In this document: positions 42,774 to 62,191 of the stretch, in pieces | Numbering within the stretch: position 1 is the stretch's first letter | How the letters are laid out: each line of letters starts with the position of its first letter | DNA from: Hyaloraphidium curvatum SAG 235-1 | Lineage: Eukaryota; Fungi; Monoblepharomycota | Length of the DNA stretch: 64,000 nucleotides | Assembly: GCA_025558095.1 (NCBI GenBank) | Contig: JAIVFI010000030.1 | Location: 1 to 64,000 of the forward strand | Direction of reading: 5' to 3' | Made by a program: the position numbers and the translations under genes | The notes under the pieces: model-generated | The model's input: the letters and a program-made list of their open reading frames with translations, nothing else | Databases searched by the model: none | What the model was told of the DNA's origin: nothing

Positions 42774-44817
42774 ATGAGCGCCCCCAAACTCCTGCGTCGC
42801 AGCACCACAGCCTCCTCGTCGTGCTGCTCACCGCTCCCGCTGCAGGCGCATGAGCACGACCACGGTGCCGCTCACGGCGGACACGCGTCGGAGGAGGTCC
42901 TGGACGGCCCGCCGGACGCCATCCCGGAGGGCACCGTCCGCGTTTTTGTTGCGAAGAAGATCGTCACCGTCGCGCCCGGGCCCGGGGTCGCCGAGGCGGT
43001 GGCGGTCGGCTCGAACGGGCGGATCCTGGCGGTCGGGTCGCGCGAGGACGTGCTGGCGTTCGCCGAGGCCAAAGCCGCCAAGGGAGCCGTGGAGGTGGAC
43101 GAGACGTTCAAGGACAAGGTGCTGCTGCCGGGATTCGTCGAGGGTGGGTCCCCCGGCGGAGCCGTCGTCAACCGATGGGCACTCACTGGTTCTCTCCCGC
43201 TCCCACCCTCCTTCTCCTCCAACATTTAGCCCACGGGCATTGCAACGAGGCCATCAACGCTACCCTCGTCAACGTCGGCTACTTCCCATCCCCCAAGGTC
43301 AACGGCGACATGTCCGAGCCCGTCAAGAGCTACGACGACATGGTCCGCGTTCTGCGGGCCGAGGACGCGGCGATGAAGGCCCGCGGGGCACCCGACGACG
43401 AGGTCATGATCGCCGTCAACTTCGACCCGATCTACTTTGTCGGGCAGCTGCGGCTCTCGAAGGAGCACCTTGACCGCGTGTCGACGACGAGGCCGATCGC
43501 CGTCCGCCACGCGTCGGGGCACGTGCTCACCGCCAACTCGCTCCTGCTCAAGCTGTCCGGGATCACCCGCGACAGCGACACCGAGGGCATCGACAAGCTC
43601 CCCGACGGCGAGCCCTCGGGGGAGCTACAGGAGGGCGCCCAACTGCTGGTCAAGGTCGCCATCACCAAGGTGCTCCAGCTGAGCGTCGGCACCGCCGCGC
43701 TGGAGAACCAGGCCCGCCTTGCGCGCAACGCCGGCGTGACCACGACGACGGAGCTGGGTGGCCTGCTCCTTTTTAAGCCCGAGATGGCCAAAGCGTGGGC
43801 CGAGACCGCCGCCAAGCCGGCGTTTCCGGCGCGGTTCGCCGTGTACAACATTGCGTTCTTCCCCGGGCTCGGGGACGGCGCGCCGGACTACGCGGGCAAG
43901 GCCGAGACCCTCAAAGGGCTGCAGGCCCTTTGCCACGACAAGCTCCGGATGCCGGGCGCCAAGCTCCTCATTGACGGCTCGATCCAGGGGTTCACCGCCG
44001 TGCTGCGGCCGCCGGGGTACTTCAAGCCGCCGTCGGGGGATCCGGATCACCAGGGGATCAGCAACTACGAGTCCCTCGAAGACTTTGTCGCGGCGCTGGA
44101 GCCCTTCCACGAAGCCGGTTTCAACGTGCACGTGCACTGCAACGGGGACGGCGCGGTGGACGTGCTCCTGGATGCCGTGGAGATCGTCAACACCAAACAT
44201 CCGCGGAGCGACCACCGGCACGTGTGCACCCACAGCCAGGTATCCAACGGCCACCGCACGACGCGTTCCTCCCCTCTCTGACCCCGCCTCCCTCTACTTT
44301 CCAGCTCACGCGGCAGGACCAGTACCTCCGCATGGCCTCGCTCGGCGTCTCGGCCAACATCTTCGCCAACCACATCTACTACTGGGGCGACCAGCACCGC
44401 GACATCACCGTCGGCCCCGAGCGCGCCGCGCGCATGAACGCCTGCCGCACCGCCCTCGCCAGCGGCGTGCGGTGTCCCAGCATCCACTCCGACTCGGGCG
44501 TCACGCCCATCGGCCACCTGCACACGATGTGGTGCGCGGTGAACCGCCTCACGGCGTCGGGCGAGGTGCTCGGGGAGGGCGAGCGGATCACAGCCGAGGA
44601 GGCGCTGAGGATGGCGACGGTCAACGCGGCGTGGCAATTGAAGATGGACAGGGACGTGGGCAGCATCGAGTGCGGGAAGATGGGGGACTTTGCGGTCTTG
44701 GAGGAGTCGCCGCTGGACGTGGACCCGGCCAAAATCAAGGACATCAAGGTCTGGGGGACGGTGGTGGGCGGGCTGAAGCACCCGTCGTCGCTGACGCTGC
44801 GGGCCGGGACGATCTGA
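42774..44817 (+). CDS. Amidohydrolase family 3 (YtcJ/NfdA-like)
   Basis: AVAV..GRILAVG, LLPGFVE|AHGH, HASGH...NS, KLLIDGSIQG, HCNGD, HSDS, GSIECGKMGDFAVL; at least two introns. Confidence 0.92.
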
Positions 44818-44945
44818 AGCTGTGCAATTGGAAGCCGAGCCTGTGACACTCACTGCTTCGGGTGAAGCTTCCACCCCGCCAATTACCCGCATATTGCTCC
44901 CCCACCGCAGCTACTCCAGAGATTCAGGACGCGGAGGCAATCGAC

Positions 44946-46457
44946 ATGCCCCTCCCGGTGTTCCACCTCGGCGAGGGCGAGTGGCTCGCGGTCCTCCCCG
45001 CGGCGCCGGAGTGGACGCCCGACCTGCCCTCCTCCGCCCCGCCGCCCGACCCCGCGGCAGCCGTCCGCGGCGCGCATCCCCTCGCGCTGGACGCGTTTCT
45101 GGCTGCGCTGCGGCCCGGCGCGGGCGCGCTGGCCTTCTCGGTGCGGCTGCAGATCGCCCTCGAGCCGCTGTCGAAGAGGCCGCTCGCGCGGGCCGCGGTG
45201 CCGTGGCTGGGCTGCGTCGGCATGGCCGCCGCGTTCGGCGTGTATGCCGGCGGATACTACGGGACGGCACAGCTCGCGACCGGGATGGCGACGTTCCTCG
45301 CGTTCGCCACCTGCTCGACCGTTCTGGTCTCGGCATTTAGCGCGTACCGGGTCACCTTCAACACCGTGAGCTCCGGCAACGATTCGAAAGCAGCCGCAGA
45401 ACCGAAGCCTGCCCGCGATTTTTCGTCCTACGGTGCCGCGGGGCTCGCCCGGTGGATGCAGCTGGTTTCCGGGGCGCTGCCTGGAGGGGCCGGGGGCCTG
45501 CTGCTGCTTCACGACCCGAAGGATCCCCTCTGCCCTTGCGGCGTCACGTCGTGCGCCGGGAGGATCCCGCTCCTGGCCGGGGTGACCCGGATCGCCGAAT
45601 CGGCATTCAAGTTCTGCATCTTCTCCGCCTACATCTTCGTGCTGTTCGCCAGCATAGCCCTCTTCCCCCCCATGGCGCCGGAAATGTGGGCCGTCCCCTG
45701 GGCCGTCTTCCTCTTTGTCATCTTCCTCGCCGGCGCGCTCGGCTTCCTGATCCCCGTCGTGTTCTCCCGCCTGACCACGAACCTCCCGCTCCTCCAGCTC
45801 GCGCGCAGGATCAACCGTCGCGCAATGAGGCTCGCCCTCGACCCCGTGGTCGAGAGCTACCGTTCCGCCGCCGCGGCTTCCGGCCCGTGGACGGGCCCCG
45901 ACAAGCCGCAGCGCGCGGCGTACATGGACCTGCACCGCATCTTCGCCAGCTCCTGGGGCAGCCGGATAAGGACGTACAACGTCTCGTCGCCGATCCTGAT
46001 CCCCATCGCCGCGGCCATTGTGGCCGGCTGCGCCAACATGGCCGCCGGATCGTGCCTCCCCGCCGTGTACCCCGTCTACCTCGCGTACCAGCTCTGCGCG
46101 CTTTTCCTGTTCGACCTCATCAACGTCGCCGCGGCCAACGCCCAGATCAGCGACATCCGCTCGCTGTACCTCGACGCGGCGCAGGAACTGGCCGACGTCC
46201 GGCGGGAGCTCCTCTCGTGCCCCTCGCGGCCCCCGGACCCGGCGCTCGCCGCCGCCATCGAGAGCGACGTGCAGGTGCTGGCGGGCTACATGGACATGGA
46301 CAGGTACCGCGCCAGGTTCCTGGGGTTCGTGGTCACGTTCGGCGCGCTGCGGACGCTGCTGGCGACCGCCCTGACCCTGGTGGTGGGGCTGTGGAGCGTG
46401 CTCAGGGGGCTGGGGGTGGAGCTCACGGGGCAGCTCGCGTGCCCTCCGAGGCTGTGA
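44946..46457 (+). CDS. Seven-TM membrane protein, gustatory-receptor-like (7TMIC-like), copy A
   Basis: Seven hydrophobic segments, long loop after TM4, HDPKDPLCPCGVTSC loop, C-terminal RARFLGFVVTFGALRTLLATALTLVVGLWSVL. Confidence 0.7.
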   Translation: MPLPVFHLGEGEWLAVLPAAPEWTPDLPSSAPPPDPAAAVRGAHPLALDAFLAALRPGAGALAFSVRLQIALEPLSKRPLARAAVPWLGCVGMAAAFGVYAGGYYGTAQLATGMATFLAFATCSTVLVSAFSAYRVTFNTVSSGNDSKAAAEPKPARDFSSYGAAGLARWMQLVSGALPGGAGGLLLLHDPKDPLCPCGVTSCAGRIPLLAGVTRIAESAFKFCIFSAYIFVLFASIALFPPMAPEMWAVPWAVFLFVIFLAGALGFLIPVVFSRLTTNLPLLQLARRINRRAMRLALDPVVESYRSAAAASGPWTGPDKPQRAAYMDLHRIFASSWGSRIRTYNVSSPILIPIAAAIVAGCANMAAGSCLPAVYPVYLAYQLCALFLFDLINVAAANAQISDIRSLYLDAAQELADVRRELLSCPSRPPDPALAAAIESDVQVLAGYMDMDRYRARFLGFVVTFGALRTLLATALTLVVGLWSVLRGLGVELTGQLACPPRL

Positions 46458-46592
46458 GCTCGTCGAGGGTTTGGACGCCGAGTGCCACCCCATGAGACGG
46501 GAGATGTCGCATGCTGATGAAGGCATTGTTGAACCCACTAGCAACTTTTTTCTGCTTAAACTCCTAAACTTTCACCGCTGCAACTTCTCCGC

Positions 46593-48118
46593 TCAAGCCG
46601 TTGCAGGACAGAAGCTCTCCAGGGTCGCCGTCACCCCGAAAGCCCGCAGCACGCTCCCAAGTGCCACGGTGACCGTCAGGCCCGTCACCAGCATCGTCCT
46701 CACCGTCCCGAACGACACCACGAACCCGAACAGCCTCGCCCTGTACCTGGCGACGTCCTGGAACGACGCTATGGCCCGATCGTGCAGCGCGATCTCGTCC
46801 GCCAGGGGTCCCGGCCCGGTGCGGAGGGCGAGCGCGCGGAGCTCCCGCTGCGCGTCGCGGTAGACGGCCGCGACGGCGTCGATGAGCGAGTGGCGCGCGG
46901 CGAGGTTGACGGCGTTGACGGTAAAGTACACTGCGGCGTGAGCGAAGAAGGCGAGCTGCCATGCGGAGATGCAGCGGCCGACCGCCTGCGGAAGGTGCCC
47001 GGGGAGCCGTCAGGGTGCGCGTCCGGCTGTACCGGGACGGCGCAATGCTCACCGCATAGAGCGCGGTAAGCAGGGCTAAGCCTGGAATCAGAGCGAGCCC
47101 GAACAGCCGCGATAACACGAGCGAGTCCTGGTGCCGCCGGAACCGGCACAGGGCCGCAAAGTGGTAGTGCAACCTGACATAGAGCCACGAACGTGAGCGG
47201 GGAGGGACGTCGCCGGCCGCAGCTGCGCGGCGGAACCGTCCTAGGAGGTCTCCCATGGCGTTGTCGACGGCGCGGCAGTGCAGCCGCCGCTCCAGGGCCA
47301 GGTGAGCCATGTTGTCCACCGCAAGGAGCCGGGAAATAGACAACAAGAGTTGCGCCGGGAAAAAGAAGGTCCATATTGCGCCGAGGAGGATGCCGTACCA
47401 AGTCGACCAAATACCTGCGCCGAAGGTTACCACCGGAGTATACGCGAGAAGGAAGAAGGTTGCCCAGGGAATGGAAACGTTGCCGAGAATATCAAGGAAG
47501 TCAAGCATACCAGAAGCGCTCTCGACCCAACTGCAGCACGAGACACACGGGCATGAAAGGTCACCGGGCACATGGCGTACGAGGGACGAGGCGGCAATGC
47601 CGGCCTCTGGCGACTTGACCCGGCCAACGAGGCGTAGCCATCTGCAGAGCGCTCCCACGTGCGAATACTCCGCCCCACCGTTGAGGAGGAAGTTCTTGCC
47701 CAGGCCCTTGGTAGCCAACCCGTTCATGACCGCGTTCCCGGCGAGGAACAAGGCCACGCCGGCGATTCCGAACGCAGCATCCTTGGCGGCGAACGTGTCT
47801 CCCGAAAACAGCAGGGTAACCCCGAGCAGAGCCACGGTAGCTGCGCTCGAAGGAGTGAGAAGAACCAGCCCGGCACCGCCCCGGGACACGCAGCCCGAGC
47901 CACGCCGCAGCCTTGGCCACCCCGCCGAGGTCGCGCAGCATTCCGTCTGCGGTCAGCGGGTCGGCCGCACGCGCCGCGTCGTTGGGGTTCGCGCCCTGCT
48001 CCTCGTCGCAGAACGTCGGCACCGGGGGAGACGGGGCGGGGAACAGGGCCAGCCACTCCTCGGGGAGGAAGTCCGCGTCCTTCTGAGGGAGAACGTCGTC
48101 GGTGTCCGAGGCGGCCAT
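46593..48118 (-). pseudogene. Frameshifted 7TM-family copy B (inverted paralogue of 60655-62191)
   Basis: Same N-terminus, intron position and C-terminus as copy C. Small deletions near 47890-47850 split the N-terminus across three frames. Confidence 0.75.
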
Positions 48119-48945
48119 CGTTAGCGGCGTTGCGGGGGGAATGTGTCTGGGGTGCTTCTGTGGAAGGGCTGGGACCAGTACGTTGTCTCCCGCGGCCGAC
48201 GAGTAACTACCTGCATCGCCGGCGTCCGAAGCTATTTCGCATGGTCGCGAGCATTGGAGCGATTGCGTCCTTCAATGATCCGGGCGCCGTTTCCCGTAGA
48301 CTCCTCGCACCGGCCCTAACGGCCTCGAAACGGCATGGCCTGCGCAGGCTTTCTCTCTACTCGTGACCGCCGGTGCTCTTCGTCATCGCCCAAGCGGCCG
48401 ATCCGAAGCCTACAGCTGTGACGTGCTTCTTCTCTGCGGTCGCCGCTGCAAGCCTTCGGCAATGCAGTTTTCGCGACGCGGCGGAGCCGCTATTGTTGCG
48501 GGTCCCCGATCTGCGGAGCTGTCTACTGCGGCACTAGAGGTCACTTGCCCGAGATGCTTTTGCACCGTCTGCCAACGTGCAACCTTTAATGTGAGGTAGG
48601 GTTGGCGCTTGAGTGGTGAGGACTCACAGGATCAATGGCCGGACCCGCAGGGTCCGAGGCGGCGGCACGGCTTCTGGAACCAACAAGGTCCGCCGGCCCG
48701 GGCGCGAACGGTGATGCATTGGATTGTTTCGGACCACGGAATCCGTGAGTGTGCTTACTTGGTTCAATGTCCGATGTGTCACGTCTCTCGGCCTGACGAT
48801 GGAATCGGCGCGGCGAATGCGAACGGACGGACACCCCAGCCACGCCAGAGCGGCGGCAGGGGAGGTCTTTGCGGCAAAATCAACCGCAGCAACGGCTCGC
48901 AACTCCGCCGCGTGAGCTTCTTCGAGTCGCTTCGCGCTTGCCGTT

Positions 48946-49161
48946 ATGAGGCCGCCGGCCTTCGCGCTCCTTGCCGCGCTGCTCTTCCTAGCGTTCCTCT
49001 GGGCGCCGCGCGCGTCCGGCCTCGCCGTTCCCTCCCAAGCCGGCGAAAATGAGGAGCATGCGTTGGCTGCGCGAGTGGCCTCCCCCGGGGGCCAGGCTTC
49101 CGGTCCGTTGCGGTCAGGCGAGATCTGGTCGGTCCTACGCGAATCCGCTAGGGCGCGCTAG
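48946..49161 (+). CDS. Small secreted peptide precursor candidate (71 aa)
   Basis: Signal-like MRPPAFALLAALLFLAFLWAPRASG, acidic pro-like segment ending ALAAR. Its stop overlaps the opposite gene's stop in CTAG at 49158-49161. Confidence 0.35.
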   Translation: MRPPAFALLAALLFLAFLWAPRASGLAVPSQAGENEEHALAARVASPGGQASGPLRSGEIWSVLRESARAR

Positions 49162-50498
49162 CACATGGCAGCCAACGCAGCCGCGGCGGCAAGTGCGGGC
49201 ACCAACCCGGCCATCGCCCTGTTCCCGCCGGCGATCCGGCTGCTCGTGACGGTGCTGGTTGCGCCGGTGGTGGATGCGATGCTGCTGGACGCGATGGTGC
49301 TGGAAACCACAGTGCTGGACGCGAGGGTGCTGGTCGCGGTGGAGCTGGCGTCGGTGCTCGGGGCTATCGTGCTCGGGGCCGCAGTTTCCGTGGTGCTCGG
49401 AGCGGCGGTGCTGGGAGCGGCGCTGCTGGTCGCAAGAGTGCTGGGGACCGCGGTGCTGGAGACAACGGTGCTGGATTCCACCGCGCTGGATTCGACCGTG
49501 CTGCTGGCCACCGTGCCTGTGGAGGCCACGGTTGAAACCGGGGTGCCGGTCCCCGCGGCACTGGATGCGATCGTGCCCGTCGCGACGGTGCTGACGGTGG
49601 CGGTGGTCGAGCCGGAGATGGCGGCAAAGGGGATGGCAGGGGAGCCGTCGACGACGGAGGCGCACCTGGCCGTCATGGCGACTGCGGCGGGGAAGTTATC
49701 GGCGTGCAGTAAGGGGGGAGAGAGAGGGGGCCATACAGGTGATGGGGCCGAGCGAGACGGTGCCGCAGTTGCCGGCGGTGACGTCGAAGGTGCCGACGCC
49801 GGTGAAGGGGATCTGGGGTGGCAGGAAAACGCGTCATGGGAGGCGGCCAGCAGGCGACGGGGAGAAACCCACGGTGCAGGCGTCGTTACCGAAGAAGGCC
49901 ATGGTGCCCGAAGCGGCGCCAGGGGCGCAGGCAGGGCGGCCGAAGGCGGGGATGCCGATGAAGCCGAGGGGCACGCACTGGTTGGCGATCACGGCGGCGG
50001 CGGTGAGGTAGGTGCCGGAGCAGGTGGCGCCGGACCACTGGGTGACGACGAAGTAGTCGCCCTGCGGATCGGAGCGGAGCGTCAGTGCTGGGCCGCGCGC
50101 GGAAATGGCGCGCGGCAACCCACCGAGCCCTGGAGGGTGAAGGACTGGGGTGCATTGGCGTTGCAGGTCTGGGTCACGTCGTAGGGCACGTTGGCGCTGC
50201 TGGACATGCATGCGACGCTCCCCTGGCAGGTGGTCGGCAAGTTTGCCTGGACTGCTTGGGGGGGAAGGGGGTGAACGGGGGACACTGATCAGTGAGGGGG
50301 GAAGGCGCCGCGGCAGCACGCACAGAGCTGCGGCGCCGTGGCGTTGGCCGTGCAGCCGCTGTCGGGCAGGAAGCCGTCGATGATGGTGGCGCCCCGGGCG
50401 GGAACGGCGGCCGCGGCGAGCAGGGCGGCGATGATCCCGAGCGCTCTGACGCGCAGCGGGAGTCCTGACTGCGAGCAGCTATTCTGCCGCCGAGTCAT
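49158..50498 (-). CDS. GPI-anchor-type cell-surface protein: receptor-kinase ectodomain plus Ser/Thr stalk, no kinase
   Basis: Signal peptide; four introns at the same positions as in the receptor kinases; Cys-rich ectodomain; 5-residue S/T repeats; C-terminal AGGNRAMAGLVPALAAAAALAAMC*. Confidence 0.85.
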
Positions 50499-50986
50499 GT
50501 CGGGATGGGCATCGGAGACGTGAACCGAGAAGTTCCCGAGCGGTCCGAGGACGCGTCGCCGGTCCATCGGCCGTGCTCGGTCGCAATGCAGTACTGACAC
50601 TCAGACGACCCGACGGCGTCGTCGCGGCCGCGAGATCCCCTCTCCACCGGAATTCCGCTCTCCGCCCACGCGCCGCACAGTGCCGGCTCCTGCGGGTTCG
50701 GTCGAGGCAGCGACGGAACTTGGCCGCTGGCTCCCTGGACGGGGCGAATTGCGACGCGGCGGGCGCCCGTCCCCGCGCCTTCGGCGGAAGAAACACTGAT
50801 GATGCGTTGCCGCAGGAGGCCCGCTGCGCAGGTCTTGAGGACTCGGCGTCGGGAAGGAGGGTGGGGACGCGCGGGCTGGTGATCTGACTCGACAGGATCC
50901 CCGCTCCCCGCTCCTCGAATCACAGCGCAGACAGACTTGTAAACACGATTGCTTAACAAAAATCGGGCGAGCTTCTACCGTCGTCC

Positions 50987-53384
50987 CTATCCGACGATCT
51001 CGTCCAGCTCCTTGGCCACCTGCACGAACGTCGGCCTCTTCTTCGGGTCCTGGTCCCAGCACCGCTCCATAAGGCTCCACACTGCGTCCGGAACCCCCTC
51101 GGGCCGCTCCGGGCGGACGCCCTTGACGGCAACGTTGTACAGGACCTGGATGGGAGGTGGTTGTCAGCGTTTGTCGCGATGGCGGCGCTCGCACCCACCA
51201 ATGCCGGGTTCAGCAGCTCCTCGAGCGGGTACTTGCCCTTGCTCACGACCTCGTAGCACAACATCGAGAACGCGTACACGTCCGCCGGCTTCTGCAGCGC
51301 CGCGCCGTCCACCAGCTCCGGCGCCAGGAACCCCGGCGTGCCCGAGAGCCCGCCGCCGACGGTGCCCGCGGCGGTCGACTTGCCGACCTCCTGGCGCACC
51401 CGCGAGAGGCCAAAGTCGGTGATCATGGCTTTGCTGCCGTCAATGAGCACGTTGAGGGACTTGATGTCGCCGTGCAGGATGCCGAGGCCGTGCAGGTAGA
51501 CCATGCCGTTGGCGACGTCTTCGAGGAAGCGCAGGCCGAGGTCTAGGGGCCAGCCGCGGGCCGACAGGTACTTGCGGAGGTTGCCGTCGCGGACGAGGTC
51601 GGTGACCATCATCGGGGGAGAAGGGCAGTAGGCCATCAGCGGGAGGACTGCGTAAAAGCGTGGAGATCAGCACCTCCACAGACTCCGAGCCGTTGGCGAG
51701 CCGCTCACCGTTACGCTGGACGAGGCCCTCCCAGTTGGTCACCTCCTTCGCAAAAGCCTTCAGGGTGTGCTCGTCGAGGTCTCCTTTCAGAGTCTTGACT
51801 GCGACTCTAGTCCCGCGCAGAGTGCCGACATAGACAACCCCAAAGCTGCCTTCTCCCAGCTTTTGCGAGCTGTCGATGACGATGTCCGTAGCCGAAACAA
51901 GGAGCTTGGAGCTCGGCTGCGGGACAGGGGGGGGGGCGATCGGGCTTCCGCCCGGAAAAAGGGGAGTGCCGGAGGCGACCGACCCAGCGGCGAGCGTGGA
52001 TCCTGCTGTGTCCGCAGAAGCTCCGTCCCCAGAGGCTGCCAGAGGAAACGCAAGAGCAACGGCGGCAGCGGGTGTCACGGGTAAAGCTTGCTCCTGGTGT
52101 GGGTCGTTGCTCGGCACTGAGGCGACGTCCTCCGCGAGCGCAGGGTTGCTGGCTTCGGAAGGTGAAGCCGCCACTCGCGGCACGCTGTCAGCGTTGCCCC
52201 TGGCGGTGGATGAAAACCCGCGAACTGTCCCAGGTTCCATATGCGGCGAGCCTGCAGGCATCTGCTTCTCTGCTTTCTCCGCAGGAATGCTCTCCGCAGG
52301 CCTCCTCCTCCGCCTCATCCAGAACAGCAGCACTACAAGCAGAGCAAGCGCCGCGAGTCCCCCAAGTACACCGCCTACGATTGCTCCGACGGGCGGCGAT
52401 GAGGAGGTCGGCGGAGAAGGGAGAGGCGTTGATTGCGTTGGCGTCGTGGTGGTGACGGATTGGGTACTTGTCGTGGCAACCGATCCCCCTGTAGCCTCTG
52501 CAAATGGAATCGGGAAACCCTGAAGCGGGTAATCGCACTTGGCCGTTAGAGCGACTGTGGCGAAACTGGTCACCAGAACTTCACGAAGAACGGAGCCGGA
52601 GGGCATACACGTAGCAGAACCGAGATTCAGAATGTCGCAGTGGCCGCGAATGGCTTTGAACGTGCCAAAGCTGGGGAAGGGCCTCTGCATGGATGCCGTG
52701 CGCATGAATAGGGTAACGCAGAGCGCGCATGAGCGGTAGGGGAAAACGTACCGAACAGGCCCCGTCAACAAAGAAGGACAAGCTCCCTTCCGCGTCGGTG
52801 ACGCCGGAGCATGTGGAGAGGCCATAGGCCGGGATGCCGAGGAAACCAAGCGGGACGCACTCATTGGTGAGCACCGCGGCGGCGGTAGAATATGTGCCGG
52901 AGCAGGAAGTGCCGGACCATTGGGTGAGGACGAAGTAATTGCCCTGCGCGGAAAATGCAAGAATCAATGGAGAGAGTGGGCGCGGCAGAAGGCGAGTGAA
53001 GAACCACCGTGCCCGAGAGCGTGAATGACTGAGGGGCGCTTGCGTCGCAAATCTGCCGAGCGTCGTAGCCAACGCTGGAAGTAGATTCACAGGCTAAATT
53101 TGCCTGACATGTCCCGGGTAGCTGGGCTTGGATTGATGGCGGTTTCGATGCCGGCCGAGTAGTGGCCGGTGTGAGCACGCACGAAAGAAATCAATGCTGC
53201 GCGGCAGCTCACAGAGCTGCTTGAAAGTGCCTGCAACAACGCATCGGCTCCCAAGAGTGAAGCCGTCGATGATTGTCGCGCCCCGTGCAGGAACCGCCCT
53301 CGTGATGATGGCGGCGATGATCGCGACCACGATGACGCGAGGCGCCGCTAGCGGCCCTGAATTATTGCTCCGATGCGCAGTCAT
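50987..53384 (-). CDS. Single-pass receptor-like TKL kinase, copy L (7 exons)
   Basis: Signal, Cys ectodomain, Thr stalk, TM VGAIVGGVLGGLAALALLVVLLFWMRRRRR, GEGSFG, VAVK, HGDIKSLN, DFG, GTPGFLAPE, CWDQDPKKRP. Confidence 0.88.
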
Positions 53385-54086
53385 GCTCGAGATCAACGTC
53401 GTAGCCACGCGTGTGCGGTGGCGGCACTTCGTCCCCCCGCGTCGGACTGCGCCCCGGCACAGCCGATCCGATGGCAAAGTCCGCGGGCGCGAACTCCGCT
53501 TGCGGCAAAGTGGTGGCCGGAACCCGCTCGGTGGCGCCGTGCGCTTGAAGCTCGGGGCGAGGGAGCAACGGAACGTTGCCACGGGTTTGGGGTCGCGTGC
53601 GACGCCGCGGCAGGCCGCTTGAGGACCGCGTCCCGAACTCCGACGAGGTAAACCCAACTGCAGCGCCAGCCCAGGCAACGGGCCTAACGTCCGGGAACTG
53701 AAGGCCTGTTTGAAGGCCCACGGCAGCGACTATGACCGCACGCGAAGCGGTGGTGTTCCTTGGAGCGGAGCGAGGGACCTCAACGAAGTCGAGCGCACGT
53801 CCTCGGGGCACGTGGGCGGCGCGGGGAGGGTTTCCGCGTCGGCACTCGTCCCGTCCAGGTCGAAAACCCAGCGTAGTTTTCGAGCAGGGGAGAGAGCGGC
53901 TGGTGGCGGCTGGAGGTCCGACGGTTCCAAGGACGCACTCGTCCGAGAGAGCCTGTACGTCTACATCCCTCACGCCCGCTTGGAGGCAGCTCGAATGGAG
54001 CAGCAAAGGAATCAAGAGCCGCCTTTTCGCGATTGTACAGGCCTGCAATTAGCATCTCGGCGTCAAACAGCTTCATGCTCCTGTGG

Positions 54087-55406
54087 TCATCTTCGATCAA
54101 CGGCCTCTGCCCGCCCGCCAATCATCTCCACTTCCGCCTCCCCATCCAAGTCCCCCAGCGGCTCGTCCAAAACCCCCTCCTGCACCCCTTCCCCGCCCCC
54201 GTCCTCCTTGGGCGCCTCCCCGCACCCCTCCCAATCCACCGTCCACCTCGCCGCGATCCCCATCTCGGCCTTCCACCCCTCCCCCGTCCTCAGGCAGTCG
54301 TTGAGCCCCGCGTGCTCGCACCCCTTCGATCCCGAATAGACGCAGTCCGAGCGCGCGCGGAGCAAGGGGGCCGAGTACAGCGCGGCCCCGCCGAACGCGC
54401 CCCGCACGGGTACGAACGGTTCCTTCCCCTCGCCGTCCCCCTGCTCCTTCACATTCTTCATCCCCTCGGGCCCGACATACTCGCAATACCACCCCCCTTT
54501 CTTCGCCCCCGCGCAGCTGCGGTGGTCCAGCGCTCCCCCGGGAAACGCGCCCCCGCCGTCGAGCGCGAACCGGTCGCAGTAGTATCCTTGCGCCCCCTCC
54601 GCGTGCGGCGCGGCGGGGACGGATGCGACGGTGCCGTTGGGGAGAGAACGGGGGAGGTACCACCCACAGATGCCGTTGGGGAAGAGGGCGGACCAGCCCT
54701 TGCCCCCGAAGGGCGGCCGGAGGTGCGAGGTGGAGGGGTCGAGGCGGTCGTACCGCCGCTCCGCGGCCAGGAGGTTGGTCCACACACCCTCCCATCCCTC
54801 CACGCCCCGCTGCCGCTCCACGCGCCACGGCACGCACATGTCCGTGTCCACCGGGAACAGGTAGTCGACGTTCGAGTACCAGGAGTGGGTCCGCAGCGCG
54901 TGGAGGTACCCGTCCCGCGCGCGGGCGAGCGTGCGGAGGTCCTTCTTCCCGCCCGGGTGGCGGAACGCGACGGCGCGGGCAGAGAGGATCTTCGGGTGTC
55001 GCGAGGGGCGGAGCGGCGGGGCCGGCGGGGCCGGCGGGTACGGAGGCGTCCAGTCTTTATGGTCGTCCTCGGATTCCAGGAACGGCACGCCGCGTTCGTC
55101 CGCCCAGGCGCGCAGCGCGCGGCCGCCGTCCCGCGAGCCGTTCTCGACGAGGAGGACGTGCAGCGCGCCAACCATCGACGCGAGGCGCTCCAAATTTGCG
55201 AGGAGGAAGGGGAGCTCGTGCGCCGCGGAGCGGGCGATGGTGGCGGCGAGGAGGACGAGGTCCGACGGGCAGCGCGCGCGGGACGCGTTGGAGGCTGTCC
55301 GTGGCGCGGGCTCCGGCTCGTCATCGAGGGCGGCCGGCGGCGACCGGAGCAGGAAAAACGACGAAATGAGCAGGACGAGCAGAACGAGTAGGTTCGGATG
55401 GGGCAT
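54087..55406 (-). CDS. CAP59/CMT1-like (GT69) mannosyltransferase-family glycosyltransferase
   Basis: N-terminal TM; VENGSRD, LARARDGYL, VDTD (DxD), DRFAL, VRGAFGGAALY, CEH; intronless. Confidence 0.8.
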   Translation of the reverse strand: MPHPNLLVLLVLLISSFFLLRSPPAALDDEPEPAPRTASNASRARCPSDLVLLAATIARSAAHELPFLLANLERLASMVGALHVLLVENGSRDGGRALRAWADERGVPFLESEDDHKDWTPPYPPAPPAPPLRPSRHPKILSARAVAFRHPGGKKDLRTLARARDGYLHALRTHSWYSNVDYLFPVDTDMCVPWRVERQRGVEGWEGVWTNLLAAERRYDRLDPSTSHLRPPFGGKGWSALFPNGICGWYLPRSLPNGTVASVPAAPHAEGAQGYYCDRFALDGGGAFPGGALDHRSCAGAKKGGWYCEYVGPEGMKNVKEQGDGEGKEPFVPVRGAFGGAALYSAPLLRARSDCVYSGSKGCEHAGLNDCLRTGEGWKAEMGIAARWTVDWEGCGEAPKEDGGGEGVQEGVLDEPLGDLDGEAEVEMIGGRAEAVDRR

Positions 55407-55824
55407 TCGAGGCCATGGGCGACACCGTTGACGGCTCTGACGGATCCGTCGATCCCCCTCCCTCGATCTCCGAGCAATTCAAGAAACCAACGACGTGAGC
55501 CACGAAATGCACAGATATACATGTGATCTATCGAGTTCGGCCTACTGGAAGTGTGGATGCTCGCGATTCGGACAGGAATCGTCCCGACCGTCCGCCGCGC
55601 CCATTCGCCGCCTGGAAGCCAACTGAGCCTGATCCGCCAATGCATGACACCGCGGAGGACACGGAAGAGCCTCTCACCAGTAAATTGCGCCCGTCTTTGC
55701 CAGTTTCGGTCGCTTGCCTCCGTTTGGGGGCCTACCAACGGTCACATGACGTGGCCCATGCAGGGCATCTGGTTCCGCACGGCCGGCGGTCCCTTATCTG
55801 ACGGCGTCATCCCGGCCCACCGGA

Positions 55825-57366
55825 ATGGCGCTCGTGTGCAGCTGCGCGACGACGCAGCTCGTGCTCCGCGGCACGGGCTCGCTGTCGCTGGTCGGCGGGG
55901 CCGGGCGGCCGCCTGGGGAGCGCGCCGCGGAGATGCCGGTGGCGACAACCGCGCCCGCGGGAGTCCAGGGTCCCGGACGCCCCGGGTTGCCCGGAGAACT
56001 CGTATCGCGCATTTTGAGCAAAGTGGACCCGCTGGACTCGGCGACGCTGGCGGCCGCCGCGGCGGTGTGCCGCGCGTGGCGGCCGTGGGCGACCGAGCGG
56101 CTGTACGCGTACTGCCGGCCGCCGCTCTCAAAGCTCGACTCGCTGGCCGCATTCTGGGAATCTCAGTACCCTTCGGGCGACGACGCGCCCTCGGCCAGCC
56201 TGCTGCTCGACGCCCCGCGGCTGCAGCACGCCGTGCGACTGGACGGGCTGTTCCCGCTGCCCCCCGCGCCCTCGTCGCTTCCCGACCACCCGCTGAAAAC
56301 CCTCGACCTCTCGCTGCTCTCGCACGCTTCGGCAGCCGCCTTGCACCGCTTGGCCCTGCACTCCCCGCCGGCCTCGGCCCTGGTCACCGCGAAAGACTAC
56401 CGCCACATGGCCGGCGGCTCCCTGGCCGCCCTGCTCACCCGCTCGCCGCGTCTGCTCCGCCTCGTCCTACCGGAAAGCTACGGCGAGGACCGCCTCTCCA
56501 TCGACGACTTTTTCCTCTCCCTGCTCCCCACCACCGTCCCCCTCCTCGCCCATCTGGCCGTGTACGACAACGGCCACGTGACGGACCGCGGCCTCCCGCC
56601 CTTCTCGCAGCTCCCCCTGCGCTCGCTCCACCTCGCAGTCGTGCCGTGGCGCGTGATTCTCGCAAAATTGCTGTCGCACCTGCCGCCCACCCTGGAATCG
56701 CTGGGCATGGGCAAGCTCAAGGCGCGCGACGCGGACCAGCTCGTCTGGTTCCTCCGCGACCACCCTTCCATGAACGAACTGGACCTCCCCCACGCCGAGC
56801 CCGGGTTCTTCGCGGGCGGCACCGTCGCCCGCCTCCTCGACGCCGCCCCGGCGCTGGAGAGGCTGGGGATCGAGGTCGAGCCCGGGCAGACCATCCCGCC
56901 CCCGCCGCCTGCGGAACCGGAACCACAACCTGCGGAAGGCGAGCAGCCCGATGCCGATCCCGGCGGCGCCGAACAGCTGCAGCCGCCCCCCGTCGCCGCA
57001 CCGGCGCCGCAGGAGCCGGAACCGCACTACCTCTCGGGCCTGCTGTCCCCTCCCCCGTCCTTGACCCACCTCCGCGTGGCGGGGCACGCGCTGCCTCCCG
57101 ATCTGCTCCCCCGCGTGCTGCCGCAGCTCGTCGCGCTGGACGCCAGGGGGTGCGGGGCGGAGGTGGCCGCGGCGTTCGCGGCGGGGGCAAGGTACCCGAA
57201 GCTGAGGATGGTGGACGTGCGAGGATGCGAGGGCGTGGAGAGGGAGGTGGTGGTGGCCGCGTGCCCGGCGCTGGAGAGGGTGTTCGTTGGGGAGATCAGG
57301 CAGGGGGACGGGCTGCGGGAGTGGGGCGCTTTCGGGAGCGAGGGGGGGAGGTGGAACCTCTCTTGA
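55825..57366 (+). CDS. F-box / RNI-like leucine-rich-repeat protein
   Basis: LPGELVSRIL...AVCRAW F-box followed by LxxLxL repeats. Start may be the ATG at 55932. Confidence 0.8.
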   Translation: MALVCSCATTQLVLRGTGSLSLVGGAGRPPGERAAEMPVATTAPAGVQGPGRPGLPGELVSRILSKVDPLDSATLAAAAAVCRAWRPWATERLYAYCRPPLSKLDSLAAFWESQYPSGDDAPSASLLLDAPRLQHAVRLDGLFPLPPAPSSLPDHPLKTLDLSLLSHASAAALHRLALHSPPASALVTAKDYRHMAGGSLAALLTRSPRLLRLVLPESYGEDRLSIDDFFLSLLPTTVPLLAHLAVYDNGHVTDRGLPPFSQLPLRSLHLAVVPWRVILAKLLSHLPPTLESLGMGKLKARDADQLVWFLRDHPSMNELDLPHAEPGFFAGGTVARLLDAAPALERLGIEVEPGQTIPPPPPAEPEPQPAEGEQPDADPGGAEQLQPPPVAAPAPQEPEPHYLSGLLSPPPSLTHLRVAGHALPPDLLPRVLPQLVALDARGCGAEVAAAFAAGARYPKLRMVDVRGCEGVEREVVVAACPALERVFVGEIRQGDGLREWGAFGSEGGRWNLS

Positions 57367-58060
57367 TCGGATCCTCGGGGAGGCGGATGGGGACGGTGCC
57401 GATGGGAACGGGAAGGAAGGGAACAGTGTCTTGCCGGATGGGAAGGGCGCTTGCTAGATGTACAGGTAGACGGCGGCGAAGAAAGGCCGATAGACAGATG
57501 CAGTAGTGGAACCTATGGGTTGGGAACGACCCGCTCTCCATCTTCTTCCTAACTGGAGCAAGAGCAGCCGTGCCCCGTTGTCCTTGCGACTCGTGGCGCG
57601 TGCTCTCCAGTTTTCTTCGCGTGCGGACGTCGGCAGTCGGCATGCACCTGCTTCGATTGCTTCGAGTATCGAGTATCAGCCTCACCAGCCCACCTCTACT
57701 TCGACCCACGTCTCCACGTCTCGCTACCGGATACCTGTTCACCGACCGGGCCGCCCGCTTTCGTCGACCAATCTTCTGCTTACGGGGCAGGCAGTGTTGG
57801 CTGCCACCGCAACGCACGGCGCACCCGCAGCGAGGAAACCGGCACTGCGCGCGGGTTCTTTCATTGCCTCGCTCCGCGCTCGAAGGAGCAGCACCCGCGG
57901 TGCCGTCCGCACCGTGCGGCGCTTAGACGGAGAGTGAAGCCCTCGGGCGCTCCCACATCGGGCCGGGTGGTGCCGCATCCCGGCGGGCGCGAGGTCCACC
58001 GCGCCCTCGCTTCGTTGTCGGTCTTTTCGCGGCCCCCCTCGACTGCGCCGCACAGCCAGG

Positions 58061-60498
58061 ATGCCTCCGCGACGACTTCGCTTACAGCCGCGACGAATGA
58101 CGCGCGTCTGCGCTGTCGGGATCGTCGCCGCGTTGATCGCCACGCGCGCGGTTCCGATCTGGGGCGCGACCATCGTCGACGGCTTCATCCCCGGCTCGGG
58201 CTGCAGGGTCAACGCCACCGCGCCGCAGCTCTGTGCGTCGACGCCCGGCCCCCACCCGCTCCTCACTGATCATGTCCCCCCTTTCCCTCTCCTGCCGAGC
58301 AGTCCAGGCGAACCTGCCGACCACCTGCCAGGGCAACGTCGCCTGCATTCCCAGTAACGCCACAGTCAACTACGACGTGACCCAGACCTGCAACGCCAAC
58401 GCCCCCCCGTCCTTCACCCTCCAGGGCTCGGTCGGTTTCCGCGCCCCATTTCCGCGCCCGGCACACTCTGACGCCCCCCTCCCCCTCCCATCCGCAGGGA
58501 GACTACTTTGTCGTCACCCAGTGGTCCGGCGCCACCTGCACCGGCACCTACCTCACCGCCGCCGCCGTGATCGCCAACCAGTGCGTGCCCCTCGGCTTCA
58601 TCGGGATCCCCGCCTTCGGCCGCCCTGCCTGCGCCCCTGGCGCCGCTTCGGGCACCATGGCCTTCTTCGGTAACGACGCCTGCACCGTGGGTTTGGCCTC
58701 GTGGCCCAGCGCCCGCCCTCCCATGACGCGTTTGTCCTGCCGCCCCAGATCCCCTTCACTGGCCTCGGCACCTTCAGCGTCACCGCCGGCAACTGCGGCA
58801 CCCTCTCGCTCGGCCCCTCCACCTGTAAGTCCCCCACTTCCCCGCCCTTTACCCCGCGCTGACAACTTCCCACCCACAGTCGCCCTGACCGCCAAGTGCG
58901 CCTCGATCGTCAATGGCTCCCCGGTCATTCCTTTTGCTGCTATTGCGGCGGTTACAACTACGACAACAACCACGACAACGCAAACGTTCACCACCGCGAC
59001 ACCAACAGAGGCGACACCGGTTCCTCCAACGCCAGCATCCTCATCTCCACCTGTTGGGGCGATCGTCGGTGGCGTGATCGGAGGAATCGCGGCGGTCGCG
59101 GCCATCGCCGGGCTGTTGTTCTGGCTGCGGCGAAGAGGTAGGCCTGCGGAAAGTGTTCCTGCGGATCCAGCAGAGAAGCAGCAGCCTAGAGGCTCGCCGA
59201 ACCTGGAAACCGCTGCGACAGCTCAGCACTACAAGGGAGCGGGCCCACCACCAGCGCCAAATGGCTTCGTTGCTTCTGCTCCAGTTCCCGCAACCATTGC
59301 CGTTGACAGTGTCCCGCGAGTGGTGGCTTCAGCTCCCGAACCTAGCAAAACCGCACTCCTCGTGGACCTCGCCTTGGTGCCAAACAATGACGCGGAACAA
59401 GCTTTGCCCGTGCAGCACGCTGCGGCCGTTGCTCTTGCTTCTCCTCCGTTGGGTATAGGGGGTGGAGCTGAGGACACGGGATCGACCTTCGCCGCGGCCT
59501 CACTTGCCTCCGGTGCTCCCCTTCCCCCCGGCGGCGGAACCCCGATCGCCCCCCTCCCTGTCCCGCAGCCGAGCTCCAAGCTCCTTGTTTCGGCTACGGA
59601 CATCGTCATCGACAGCTCGCAAAAGCTGGGAGAGGGCAGCTTTGGGGTTGTCTATGTCGGCACTCTGCGCGGGACTAGAGTCGCAGTCAAGACTCTGAAA
59701 GGAGACCTCGACGAGCACACTCTGAAGGCTTTTGCGAAGGAGGTGACCAACTGGGAGGGCCTCGTCCAGCGTAACGGTGAGCGGCTCGCCAACGGCTCGG
59801 AGTCTGTGGAGGTGCTGATCTCCACGCTTTTACGCAGTCCTCCCGCTGATGGCCTACTGCCCTTCTCCCCCGATGATGGTCACCGACCTCGTCCGCGACG
59901 GCAACCTCCGCAAGTACCTGTCGGCCCGCGGCTGGCCCCTAGACCTCGGCCTGCGCTTCCTCGAAGACGTCGCCAACGGCATGGTCTACCTGCACGGCCT
60001 CGGCATCCTGCACGGCGACATCAAGTCCCTCAACGTGCTCATTGACGGCAGCAAAGCCATGATCACCGACTTTGGCCTCTCGCGGGTGCGCCAGGAGGTC
60101 GGCAAGTCGACCGCCGCGGGTACCGTCGGCGGCGGGCTCTCTGGCACGCCGGGGTTCCTGGCGCCGGAGCTGGTGGACGGCGCGGCGCTGCAGAAGCCGG
60201 CGGACGTGTACGCGTTCGCGATGCTGTGCTACGAGGTCGTGAGCAAGGGCAAGTACCCGCTCGAGGAGCTGCTGAACCCGGCATTGGTGGGTGCGAGCGC
60301 CGCCATCGCGAGCTTCGCTGACAATCACCTCCCACCCAGGTCCTGTACAACGTCGCCGTCAAGGGCGTCCGCCCGGAGCGGCCCGAGGGGGTCCCGGACG
60401 CGGTGTGGAGCCTGATGGAGCGGTGCTGGGACCAGGACCCGAAGAAGAGGCCGACGTTCGTGCAGGTGGCCAAGGAGCTGGACGAAATCGTCAGATAG
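58061..60498 (+). CDS. Single-pass receptor-like TKL kinase, copy R (7 exons)
   Basis: Introns 58233-58302, 58431-58497, 58687-58748, 58825-58879, 59777-59837 and 60287-60339 give an open signal-ectodomain-stalk-TM-kinase frame ending LDEIVR*. Confidence 0.92.
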
Positions 60499-60654
60499 GC
60501 CCTACGGTAGATGTCCCCACTACTTTTGCAATTCAATCGTGTTTGCAGATCTGGCGGCGCTGTGATTCGAGGAGCGGGCTGGCCACGGCGCGACTTCCTC
60601 TCCCCCGCGAATCTCCCGCAGATTGTCTCCCGAGCAGACAGCCTCCCAACGACG

Positions 60655-62191
60655 ATGGCCGCCTCGGGCGCCGACGACGTTATCCTTCAGAAGGACGCGG
60701 ACTTCCTGCCCGAAGAGTGGCTGGCCCTATTCCCCGCCCCGTCTCCCCCGGTCCCGACGTTCGGCGACGAGGAGCAGGGCGCGAACCCCGAGGACGCCGC
60801 CCGCGCAGCTGACCCTCTGACGGCGGACGGAATATTGCGCGACCTGGGCGGCGCGGCAAAGGTGGCGGCGTGGCCCGTCCTGCGCGTCCACGCGGCGCTG
60901 CCGGGCTGGTTCACGGCACTCGCGATTTCCCCTTCCAGTGCCGCCACCATCGCCCTCCTCGGGCTCACCGTGCCCTTGGCAGGGGACATGTTTACCGCCA
61001 AGGACGTGGCGCTCGGAATTGCGGGGACGACGCTGTTTCTCACAGGGCTCTCTGTCAGTTACGGCCTCGTCAGCCCGTTCCTCGGCGCCAACATTTTTCG
61101 GAACGGCTTGGTGGAGTTCTCGCACGTGGCAGCTCTTTGCCGATGGCTGCGGCTCGTTGGCCGAGGGAAAACGCCTCAGGGCGTCGAGGCCGCCTCCTCG
61201 CCCCTCGTGCGCCACGTCCCCGGCGACCTCTCTTGCCCGTGTACGTCGTGCTGCAGTTGGGTCGAAAGCACATCTGGAATCCTCGACTTCCTCGATCTTT
61301 TCGGCAACGTTTCCCTTGGTTGGATGGTCTTGTTCTTTTTCGCCTACACACCGGTTGTAACCTTCGGTGCGGCCCTGTGGTCGACTTGGTACGGCGCTCT
61401 CCTTGGGGCCATATGGGCATCCATGTTTCCGGCTTACATCTTCACTGCGTTGTCACGCCTCCTGGGGAACGACAATATGGCTCACACGGCCCTCCAACGG
61501 CGGCTGCACTGCCGAGCTGTCGATATGGCCATGGCTGACCTCCTGAGCCGGTTTCGCAGCGCCGCTGCTGCCGGCGATGCGCCTCCCCGCGCGGATTCGT
61601 GGCTCTACGTCAGGCTGCACTATCGCTTCGCGGCGCTCTGCCGGTTCAGACGCCAGCAGGACGGGATCGTGATCTCGCGGCTGTACGGGCTCGCTCTCGT
61701 GCCGGGTGCGGTCCTGCTTACCGCGCTGTATGCGGTGAGTGTCGCAGCGTCACGGTGCCGCCGGACACGCAACCTGACGGCTCCCCGGGCACCTTCCGCA
61801 GGCCGTCGGCCGCTGTATCTCCGCCTGGCAGCTTGCCGTGTTCGCCCACGCCGCGGTGTACTTTACCGTCAACGCCGTCAACCTCGCCTCCCGCAACTCG
61901 CTCATCGACGCCGTCGCGGCCGTCTACCGCGACGCGCAGAGGGAGCTCCGTGCGCTCGCGCTCCGCACCGGGCCGGGACCCCTTGCGGACGAGATCGCGC
62001 TCCACGACCGCGCGATAGCGTCGTTTCAGGACGTCGCCAGGTACAGGGCGAAGCTGTTCGGGTTCGTGGTGTCGTTCGGGACGGTGAGGACGATGCTGGT
62101 GACGGGGCTGACGGTCGCCGTCGCGCTGTGGAGCGTGCTGCGGGCTTTCGGGGTGACGGCGACCCTTGAGAGCTTCTGTCCCGTATCATAG
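60655..62191 (+). CDS. Seven-TM membrane protein, gustatory-receptor-like (7TMIC-like), copy C
   Basis: Intron 61735-61801; HVPGDLSCPCTSCC loop; C-terminal RAKLFGFVVSFGTVRTMLVTGLTVAVALWSVL. Confidence 0.75.

Follow-up and report, generated by a model that had tools for sequence, protein, structure and literature searches.

In the analysed window, a stretch of 64,000 nucleotides from contig JAIVFI010000030.1 of the fungus Hyaloraphidium curvatum SAG 235-1, the profile scan of the six-frame translation located exactly three members of one protein family, designated genes A, B and C (Table 1). The three paralogues described in the initial annotation are therefore present, but gene B is broken by two deletions. 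To the products of gene C exons 1 and 2, protein A shows 28% (E 7e-14) and 37% (E 5e-23) identity, respectively; the DNA identity between genes B and C is 90%, and that between their introns 85%. Genes B and C lie within an inverted segmental duplication in which a receptor-kinase-like gene adjoins each copy, and no repeats flanking the genes were found beyond this local inverted duplication. The exact look-up of the gene A protein gave no record, and none of the 151 fetched family representatives mapped to the window at ≥95%.

Table 1. Positions of the family genes and their main features in the window.
Feature	Start	End	Strand	Description
Gene A, CDS	44946	46457	+	Intronless, one open frame, 503 aa + stop; predicted 7TMIC-fold protein
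Signature H-x3-D-x2-C-P-C-x4-C	45510	45554	+	Gene A codons H189-C203, intracellular loop 1
Cytosolic helices after TM4/before TM5	45765	45986	+	Gene A residues 274-347, anchor bundle first half
TM6 cytosolic extension and TM7a	46137	46286	+	Gene A residues 398-447, anchor bundle second half
TM7b, candidate pore helix	46338	46409	+	Gene A residues 465-488
Intron of RNA antisense to gene A	46320	46375	-	56 nt, GT..AG on minus strand; covers TM7b codons
Gene B, overall	46593	48118	-	
Gene B exon 1, frame-broken	47053	48118	-	DNA alignment with gene C
Gene B intron	46986	47052	-	67 nt, GT..AG; sequence and RNA contig
Gene B exon 2	46593	46985	-	130 codons + stop, TM6 to C-terminus; profile match E 3e-39
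Gene C, overall	60655	62191	+	Single 67-nt intron, 489 aa
Gene C exon 1	60655	61734	+	360 codons, N-terminus to TM5; profile match E 5e-55
Gene C intron	61735	61801	+	67 nt, GT..AG; same position as gene B intron
Gene C exon 2	61802	62191	+	129 codons + stop, TM6 to C-terminus

When aligned with gene C at the DNA level, gene B lacks 1 nt between positions 47884 and 47883 and a further 10 nt between 47854 and 47853; owing to these deletions, the frame opened by the ATG at 48118 stops after 185 codons. The RNA contigs are identical to the genome sequence across the deletion region, and they skip the 67 nt of the intron, indicating that gene B is transcribed and spliced. A 49-nt intron that would restore the frame was also considered, and was rejected because the RNA contigs run through the region without such a joint, with the reservation that rare forms are dropped from contigs. 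As both deletions break the frame, gene B is probably a young pseudogene. The dN/dS ratio between B and C amounts to 0.12-0.35 outside a 25-codon segment in TM5, and to 0.72 in the segment itself, indicating that the divergence of the two copies was under purifying selection before gene B was broken.

Over gene A, an RNA-derived contig contains, with 0 mismatches, a joint that skips 56 nt. Its interpretation as a sense intron of gene A was rejected, since canonical ends exist on the minus strand only, and since its removal would delete the candidate pore helix and shift the frame. The sole strand-informative RNA evidence over gene A is antisense, an observation which counts against the explanation that we favour below.

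The seven membrane helices of gene A (79-99, 107-128, 219-241, 251-273, 348-368, 374-397 and 465-488) are delimited in agreement by hydropathy and by the AF2 model, and a 499-aa paralogue has the same seven-helix layout. Most of the features listed in the initial annotation were recovered: seven transmembrane segments, a hydrophilic N-terminus devoid of any signal-peptide-like segment, a long loop after TM4 (74 residues between TM4 and TM5), and the (F/L)(L/F)GFVVxF stretch leading into a split last helix, which reads FLGFVVTF in A and LFGFVVSF in B and C. In the gene A model, this last helix is divided into TM7a (432-447) and TM7b (465-488), with an extended linker between them. The AxxNxxI motif reported after TM6 occurs in A and C (A395-x2-N398-x2-I401 in gene A numbering), but B has His in place of Asn398, a position that is 97% conserved. 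Across 109 sequences, the flanks of the inner loops hold 0.129 K+R per residue versus 0.044 in the outer loops, and median loop lengths are 85, 75 and 64 residues on the inner side versus 7, 8 and 5 on the outer side, where the C-terminal tail adds 14 (an overall range of 64-85 versus 5-14). According to the positive-inside rule, the N-terminus would thus lie inside and the C-terminus outside, and not in the reverse orientation that the initial annotation had named as contrary to its reading.

Two sets of conserved residues stand out on opposite sides of the membrane. The cysteines C370 in EL3 and C499 in the tail, 95-98% conserved, belong to strands that pair at the outer face of the model, in keeping with the predicted topology, and likely form a disulfide bond between EL3 and the C-terminal tail. 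In intracellular loop 1, the signature residues H189, C196 and C203 are conserved in 100% of the 109 sequences, C198 in 99% and D193 in 94%, within a region modelled by AF2 in gene A at a confidence of 86-95; this His/Asp/Cys3 cluster is a candidate cytosolic metal (zinc) site.

The anchor bundle comprises in its first half the gene A helices 280-310 and 320-343, with R288, R292, A293 and W337 each at least 88% conserved, and in its second half the cytosolic part of TM6, a helix of 51 residues in all (374-424), and the helix 432-447, where L445 is 91% conserved. TM7b is the most conserved helix of the family, with an entropy of 1.69 versus 2.8-3.1 for TM1-6; together with EL3 it forms the most conserved part of the proteins, and TM1-6 the most variable. 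Its consensus, R-T-x3-T-x2-T-x3-G-L-W-S-x-L-R-G, includes a stripe of small and hydroxyl residues, T470-T474-T477-G481-S484-G488 (conservation moment p = 0.025). Such a combination of constant TM7b and anchor with variable TM1-6 appears receptor-like, as would be expected of receptors diversified for their ligands.

Sequence comparison did not connect the family with any described one. Pfam gave nothing at E ≤ 10 for gene A or for the reading frames of B and C, including 7tm_7 (PF08395), Trehalose_recp (PF06151), 7tm_6 (PF02949) and DUF3537 (PF12056), and the family profile run against PDB sequences retrieved no OR or GR at E ≤ 10, just two short matches at chance level. TM7 of GR and GRL proteins carries the motif TYhhhhhQF; by visual inspection, this motif is absent here, as Tyr, Gln and Phe are missing from the places where it has them and a Thr is the sole residue that plausibly aligns. 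The word-indexed protein search returned the same eight H. curvatum proteins with gene A and with a 41-sequence profile, and no other organism, while two metagenome scans with conserved TM6 and TM7b peptides matched 57 and 49 stretches, with 0 confirmed relatives. Literature searches uncovered no publication dealing with this family or with the nuclear genome of H. curvatum.

In regard to the fold, the AF2 model of gene A reached a pLDDT of 91.5 and a pTM of 0.90, and that of a paralogue 25% identical to it a pLDDT of 88.8. In exhaustive structure searches with both models, insect OR, GR and Orco chains were aligned in order across all seven helices, and every OR/GR/Orco representative outranked all other membrane proteins; no GPCR, PAQR or rhodopsin was among the best 50, and an adenosine A2A receptor chain appeared in the Foldseek list of the second model only (E 0.7, probability 0.08). 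Foldseek placed GR/OR chains in each of the first 11 ranks for the gene A model, the probability reaching 0.97 and E being no better than 4.5e-3; for both models E-values never reached 1e-3, and TM-scores were 0.25-0.41. Apart from the plant DUF3537 found in the ESM Atlas (TM 0.56/0.63 over 367 residues by shape), insect smell and taste receptor channels were the only whole-chain matches to the predicted shape, and four-helix-bundle proteins matched residues 273-458 alone. Language-model features provided the weak leads DUF3537 (0.90) and 7tm_7 (0.85). The cytosolic projections of TM4-TM6 and the split TM7 are present in the model, with the TM4 and TM5 extensions forming distinct helices bounded by short breaks. 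The GR/OR-type 7TMIC layout suggested from the sequence, for which structure prediction and Foldseek had been proposed as a check, is thereby supported by two independent high-confidence models that match OR/GR/Orco, have seven TM segments and combine a split TM7 with a cytosolic anchor bundle.

Association of subunits was explored with four copies of residues 254-503, which scored 0.45 (median of three runs), whereas the highest-scoring of three controls reached 0.00, for a truncated chain with a partner pLDDT of 52-57 and with the score calibrated on two copies, not four. The runs agreed in at least 33% of contacts. Predicted inter-subunit contacts fall in the anchor helices, at 281-300, 318-338, 401-408 and 441-447, regions that include the conserved R288, R292, A293, W337 and L445, and no confident inter-subunit contacts were reported for TM7b. 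The prediction would support self-association via the anchor helices; the score could also stem from the memory of the model for solved OR/GR tetramers.

The expansion of the family foreseen in the initial annotation proved to be understated. The signature DNA pattern had 312 matches in the genome versus 2 for a control, 427 representative proteins at E ≤ 1e-3 correspond to 427 clusters at 50% identity, all 87 scored matches out of 824 first-look candidates were significant, and the named family matches all belong to H. curvatum. We put the copy number in the genome at no fewer than about 310, and probably at 350-450; with 300-450 copies, the 32-Mb genome would have a family gene roughly every 70-100 kb. 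Paralogues have a mean column identity of 36%, most pairs being 25-35% identical, and the copies are grouped in local clusters. Exact duplicates on small contigs were also found, one of them (C48) identical to gene C, and another pair identical to each other (C47 and C17).

The explanation that we favour, as a somewhat better than even prospect, is that A, C and the broken B belong to a massively expanded, lineage-specific family that has the fold of seven-transmembrane ion channels (7TMIC), as known from the odorant and gustatory receptors of insects, and that would form ligand-gated channels, probably as tetramers. We infer the tetramer, the pore, ligand gating and the sensory role. Each subunit would have its N-terminus in the cytosol, and four subunits would join via the cytosolic anchor bundle made of the TM4, TM5 and TM6 extensions and TM7a, so that the conserved TM7b helices, with their Thr/Ser/Gly stripe, could line a central cation pore. 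The TM1-TM6 bundle, variable from paralogue to paralogue, would provide the ligand pocket, and because the proposed pocket differs between paralogues, the repertoire as a whole would respond to numerous distinct chemicals from outside.

It is also conceivable, at roughly one chance in a few, that the proteins have the 7TMIC fold yet do not receive external chemicals, being channels or membrane regulators controlled from inside (through metal or redox state at the His/Asp/Cys3 loop), or organellar or structural proteins, with the copy number driven by other selection, for instance a need to recognise cells, viruses or toxins. H. curvatum is a unicellular water fungus described as non-flagellate and non-motile, so that a chemotactic role is not obvious. 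The best conserved feature outside the pore is the cytosolic cluster of H189, D193, C196, C198 and C203, the inverted duplication places a receptor-kinase-like gene next to both B and C, and for most non-insect 7TMICs ligand or channel activity is not known (PMC9998090). On the other hand, the contrast between TM1-6 and the constant TM7b and anchor fits ligand-diversified receptors, and hundreds of paralogues 25-35% identical are hard to reconcile with a housekeeping channel.

We regard it as improbable that convergence, or an artefact of modelling, accounts for the likeness to insect receptors, with an unrelated seven-helix protein (a transporter or scaffold) resembling them through generic packing of long helices. 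The lack of sequence similarity in Pfam and among PDB sequences and the low Foldseek TM-scores would agree with such an origin, but two models from sequences 25% identical concur, OR/GR/Orco rank first with all helices in order, the exhaustive searches place no GPCR, PAQR or rhodopsin in the best 50, and DUF3537 was recovered independently by Atlas shape and by language-model features (0.90). A mobile element or assembly redundancy, in place of a selected host family, as the source of the copy number is very unlikely: the exact duplicates on small contigs and the inverted duplication of B and C point in that direction, but the paralogues are ancient and divergent, fall into 427 clusters at 50% identity, show dN/dS well below 1, and lack flanking repeats except for the local inverted duplication.

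Compared with the insect OR/GR/Orco structures (PDB 7LIC, 8V00, 8V3C, 8JM9, 8VC1, 6C70), the family shares seven helices with the N-terminus predicted inside, loops that are short on the outer and long on the inner side, an anchor bundle of TM4-6 extensions and TM7a, a split TM7 with TM7b most conserved, and a large, divergent, clustered repertoire with pseudogenes. It differs in lacking detectable sequence similarity and TYhhhhhQF, in about 75 extra N-terminal residues, in the length of intracellular loop 1 (about 85 residues), which holds the conserved His/Asp/Cys3 cluster, in the conserved EL3/C-tail cysteine pair, and in its host, a unicellular non-flagellate fungus. The chytrid GRL1 proteins of Spizellomyces punctatus and S. 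palustris, which keep only one of the four TM7 motif positions, are by description also fungal members of the superfamily assigned by topology and predicted structure, with a poor TM7 motif (Benton et al. 2020, PMC7746228). Unlike the hundreds of genes in H. curvatum, they occur as one gene per species, and unicellular GRLs comprise 17 proteins from 7 species; outside animals and plants, the literature gives handfuls of 7TMIC genes (PMC7746228), and neither a ligand nor a current is reported for any of these (PMC9998090). The plant DUF3537 proteins (PF12056) have the same predicted fold and a function that is likewise not known, but H. curvatum proteins have no PF12056 match at E ≤ 10, and the plant families are small, with 4-12 members (PMC7746228). 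The PHTF-like eukaryotic 7TMICs of Class B (Himmel et al. 2023 preprint, 10.1101/2023.08.30.555482) have the core 7TMIC fold as well, and their first intracellular loop is likewise enlarged, although in H. curvatum this loop is no longer than about 85-90 residues and includes a Cys/His motif.

The His/Asp/Cys3 cluster on the cytosolic side and the cysteine pair on the outer side represent new structural features, and a culturable fungus with hundreds of such genes would offer a deep natural alignment for a twilight-zone fold. Tentatively, and at slightly less than even chances, we suggest that H. curvatum independently built an insect-scale repertoire of 300-450 divergent 7TMIC-fold channels through local duplication and loss of genes, perhaps with antisense regulation as well. 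If true, this would be, to our knowledge, the largest 7TMIC repertoire outside animals, and would represent a chemical sense founded on a repertoire in a cell that has neither nervous system nor flagellum, meaning that large repertoires of 7TMIC type can evolve without neurons. The family bears on the question of where the fold of the insect smell and taste receptors came from and what its ancestral role was, and could serve as an experimental system for what non-animal 7TMICs sense.

Genes A, B and C, the three paralogues of one divergent seven-helix membrane protein family in the window, resemble in predicted structure the seven-transmembrane ion channel (7TMIC) fold of insect odorant and gustatory receptors (OR/GR/Orco). 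In the gene A protein, whose residue numbers are used throughout, hydropathy and the AF2 model concordantly place membrane helices at 79-99, 107-128, 219-241, 251-273, 348-368, 374-397 and 465-488. Across 109 family sequences, the TM1/2, TM3/4 and TM5/6 loops and the tail are short (median 7, 8, 5 and 14 residues) and carry 0.044 K+R per residue, while the remaining loops (85, 75 and 64 residues) carry 0.129 in their membrane-flanking parts, which places the N-terminus inside and the C-terminus outside. The C370/C499 pair, 95-98% conserved and located in the model on paired strands of extracellular loop 3 and the tail, is consistent with an outer, oxidising location.

The gene A model, built from a 41-sequence alignment of paralogues from the same genome, reached pLDDT 91.5 and pTM 0.90. 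Its structural matches include BmGr9 (9.9) and an Orco-complex chain (9.6), and in a second comparison with more chains the top 16 rows were OR/GR, with AgamOR28 at 12.3 and AaegOR10 at 12.1, and Orco 6C70 scored 9.7. In Foldseek, the first 11 rows were exclusively GR/OR, with probability of at most 0.97 and a best E of only 4.5e-3. In the ESM Atlas, plant DUF3537 matched at TM 0.56/0.63 over 367 residues, and a cnidarian cluster at 0.56/0.69. The GR/OR-type fold and topology proposed in the initial annotation are supported by the matches and the charge-based orientation.

In regard to assembly, four copies of gene A residues 254-503 gave 0.45 (median of three runs), with three controls scoring 0.00 at best; the score was calibrated on pairs rather than tetramers, and memory of solved OR/GR tetramers is a possible source. 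These runs had contact agreement of at least 33% and partner pLDDT of at least 52. Confident inter-copy contacts at 281-300, 318-338, 401-408 and 441-447 correspond to the anchor helices, the cytosolic bundle of TM4-TM6 extensions and TM7a, and conserved R288, R292, A293, W337 and L445 are located on these contacting helices. The last helix, TM7b, has the lowest entropy (1.69 vs 2.8-3.1 for TM1-6) and a conservation moment of 0.134 vs 0.067 in shuffles (p = 0.025). Its one-sided stripe of small and hydroxyl residues (T470, T474, T477, G481, S484, G488), flanked by R469 and R487, would fit a face that either lines a pore or packs tightly. Among family-specific features, intracellular loop 1 contains a candidate cytosolic zinc site made up of H189, D193, C196, C198 and C203 (94-100% conserved, model confidence 86-95), and the N-terminal 75 residues hold a conserved EWL..P motif (P18, 96%).

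The window (C30:1-64000 of the 31.9 Mb, 55-contig assembly; G+C ~68%) contains exactly three members according to the family profile over its six-frame translation, in agreement with the number previously claimed. Gene A shares 28% identity with gene C exon 1 (E 7e-14) and 37% with exon 2 (E 5e-23). Genes B and C share 90% DNA identity.

Gene models and neighbouring features in the window
Feature	Position	Strand	Description
Gene A	44946-46457	+	single open frame, 503 codons
Gene C exon 1	60655-61734	+
Gene C intron	61735-61801	+	67 nt, GT..AG
Gene C exon 2	61802-62188, stop 62189-62191	+
Gene B	ATG 48118, intron 47052-46986, stop 46595-46593	-	structure as in gene C
Inverted duplication, 7TM arms	46606-48121 vs 60652-62181		83-87% complementary
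Inverted duplication, arm pair	50907-51952 vs 59533-60578		inverted
Inverted duplication, arm pair	49618-50454 vs 58102-58943		inverted
Amidohydrolase-family gene	43175-44281	+	PF07969, E 3.5e-27; immediately upstream of gene A
Receptor-kinase-like gene	58567-60415	+	single-pass
Receptor-kinase-like gene	50953-52960	-	single-pass
Open frame between arms	55825-57366	+	513 aa, F-box-like (PF12937, E 2.7e-5)

The suggested expansion of the family is supported genome-wide: a DNA signature for H-x3-D-x2-C-P-C occurred 312 times vs 2 for the reversed control, and an exhaustive protein search gave 427 representatives (50%-identity clusters) at E <= 1e-3 and 364 at 1e-10. Each of the 10 representatives sampled, and each of the 8 named matches, was an H. 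curvatum singleton. In the profile search of the genome, where 85 of 824 first-look candidates were scored, all 87 resulting matches were significant (weakest E 4e-34). Copies frequently lie in local clusters. Gene C exon 1 has a 100% identical copy at G000:C48:16204-17283, and a member on contig C17 has an identical-scoring twin at G000:C47:83211-84107; such small contigs exactly repeating larger ones may be haplotigs, possibly inflating the counts slightly. The C/B subfamily has ~10 members, apparently with a common intron position, since exon-1 matches stop near the same query residue. Two metagenome scans gave no confirmed relatives, and literature searches found no published description of this family.

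Genes B and C lie in an inverted segmental duplication, of which they are the outer parts; each arm holds one 7TM gene and one receptor-kinase-like gene, and the kinase arms are 96% complementary. The kinase-like genes encode an ectodomain rich in Thr and Pro, followed by a single TM segment and a kinase domain of the Tyr/Ser-Thr type (PF07714, E 2.8e-24); the kinase part is in a different frame, implying an intron. Gene B is broken: compared with gene C it has two deletions, one of 1 nt (between 47884 and 47883) and one of 10 nt (between 47854 and 47853), so that the frame from its ATG ends after 185 codons. It also has His at the position of Asn398 (97% of the family). Judging by dN/dS of 0.12-0.35 by segment, with the exception of a 25-codon TM5 segment (0.72), B and C nevertheless diverged under purifying selection, which makes the break recent. 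Their uneven dS (0.27 in exon 2 vs ~0.8-1.1 in the middle) suggests gene conversion at the ends.

One public run, which holds RNA because its contigs contain spliced joints, includes 83% of sampled words of 44900-48200. One contig skips 67 nt (GT..AG on the minus strand), excising the gene B intron exactly as modelled, and contigs cross the frameshift region with zero differences from the genome. The sole joint over gene A, a 56-nt skip at 46320-46375 between pieces 45238-46318 and 46375-46504, has canonical GT..AG ends only on the minus strand and therefore marks spliced RNA antisense to gene A, with the intron overlapping the TM7b codons; read on the sense strand, the skip would shift the frame. 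Contigs end in adapter letters at 46504 and 46584, and the spacer between the convergent genes A and B is uncovered. A contig from the amidohydrolase-family gene extends to 45050, covering the first 100 nt of gene A coding sequence.

The initial observation is confirmed, and the 7TMIC reading of this H. curvatum family is supported as regards its fold, its topology and its expansion; we infer that its members may act as channels, bind ligands and serve in sensing.
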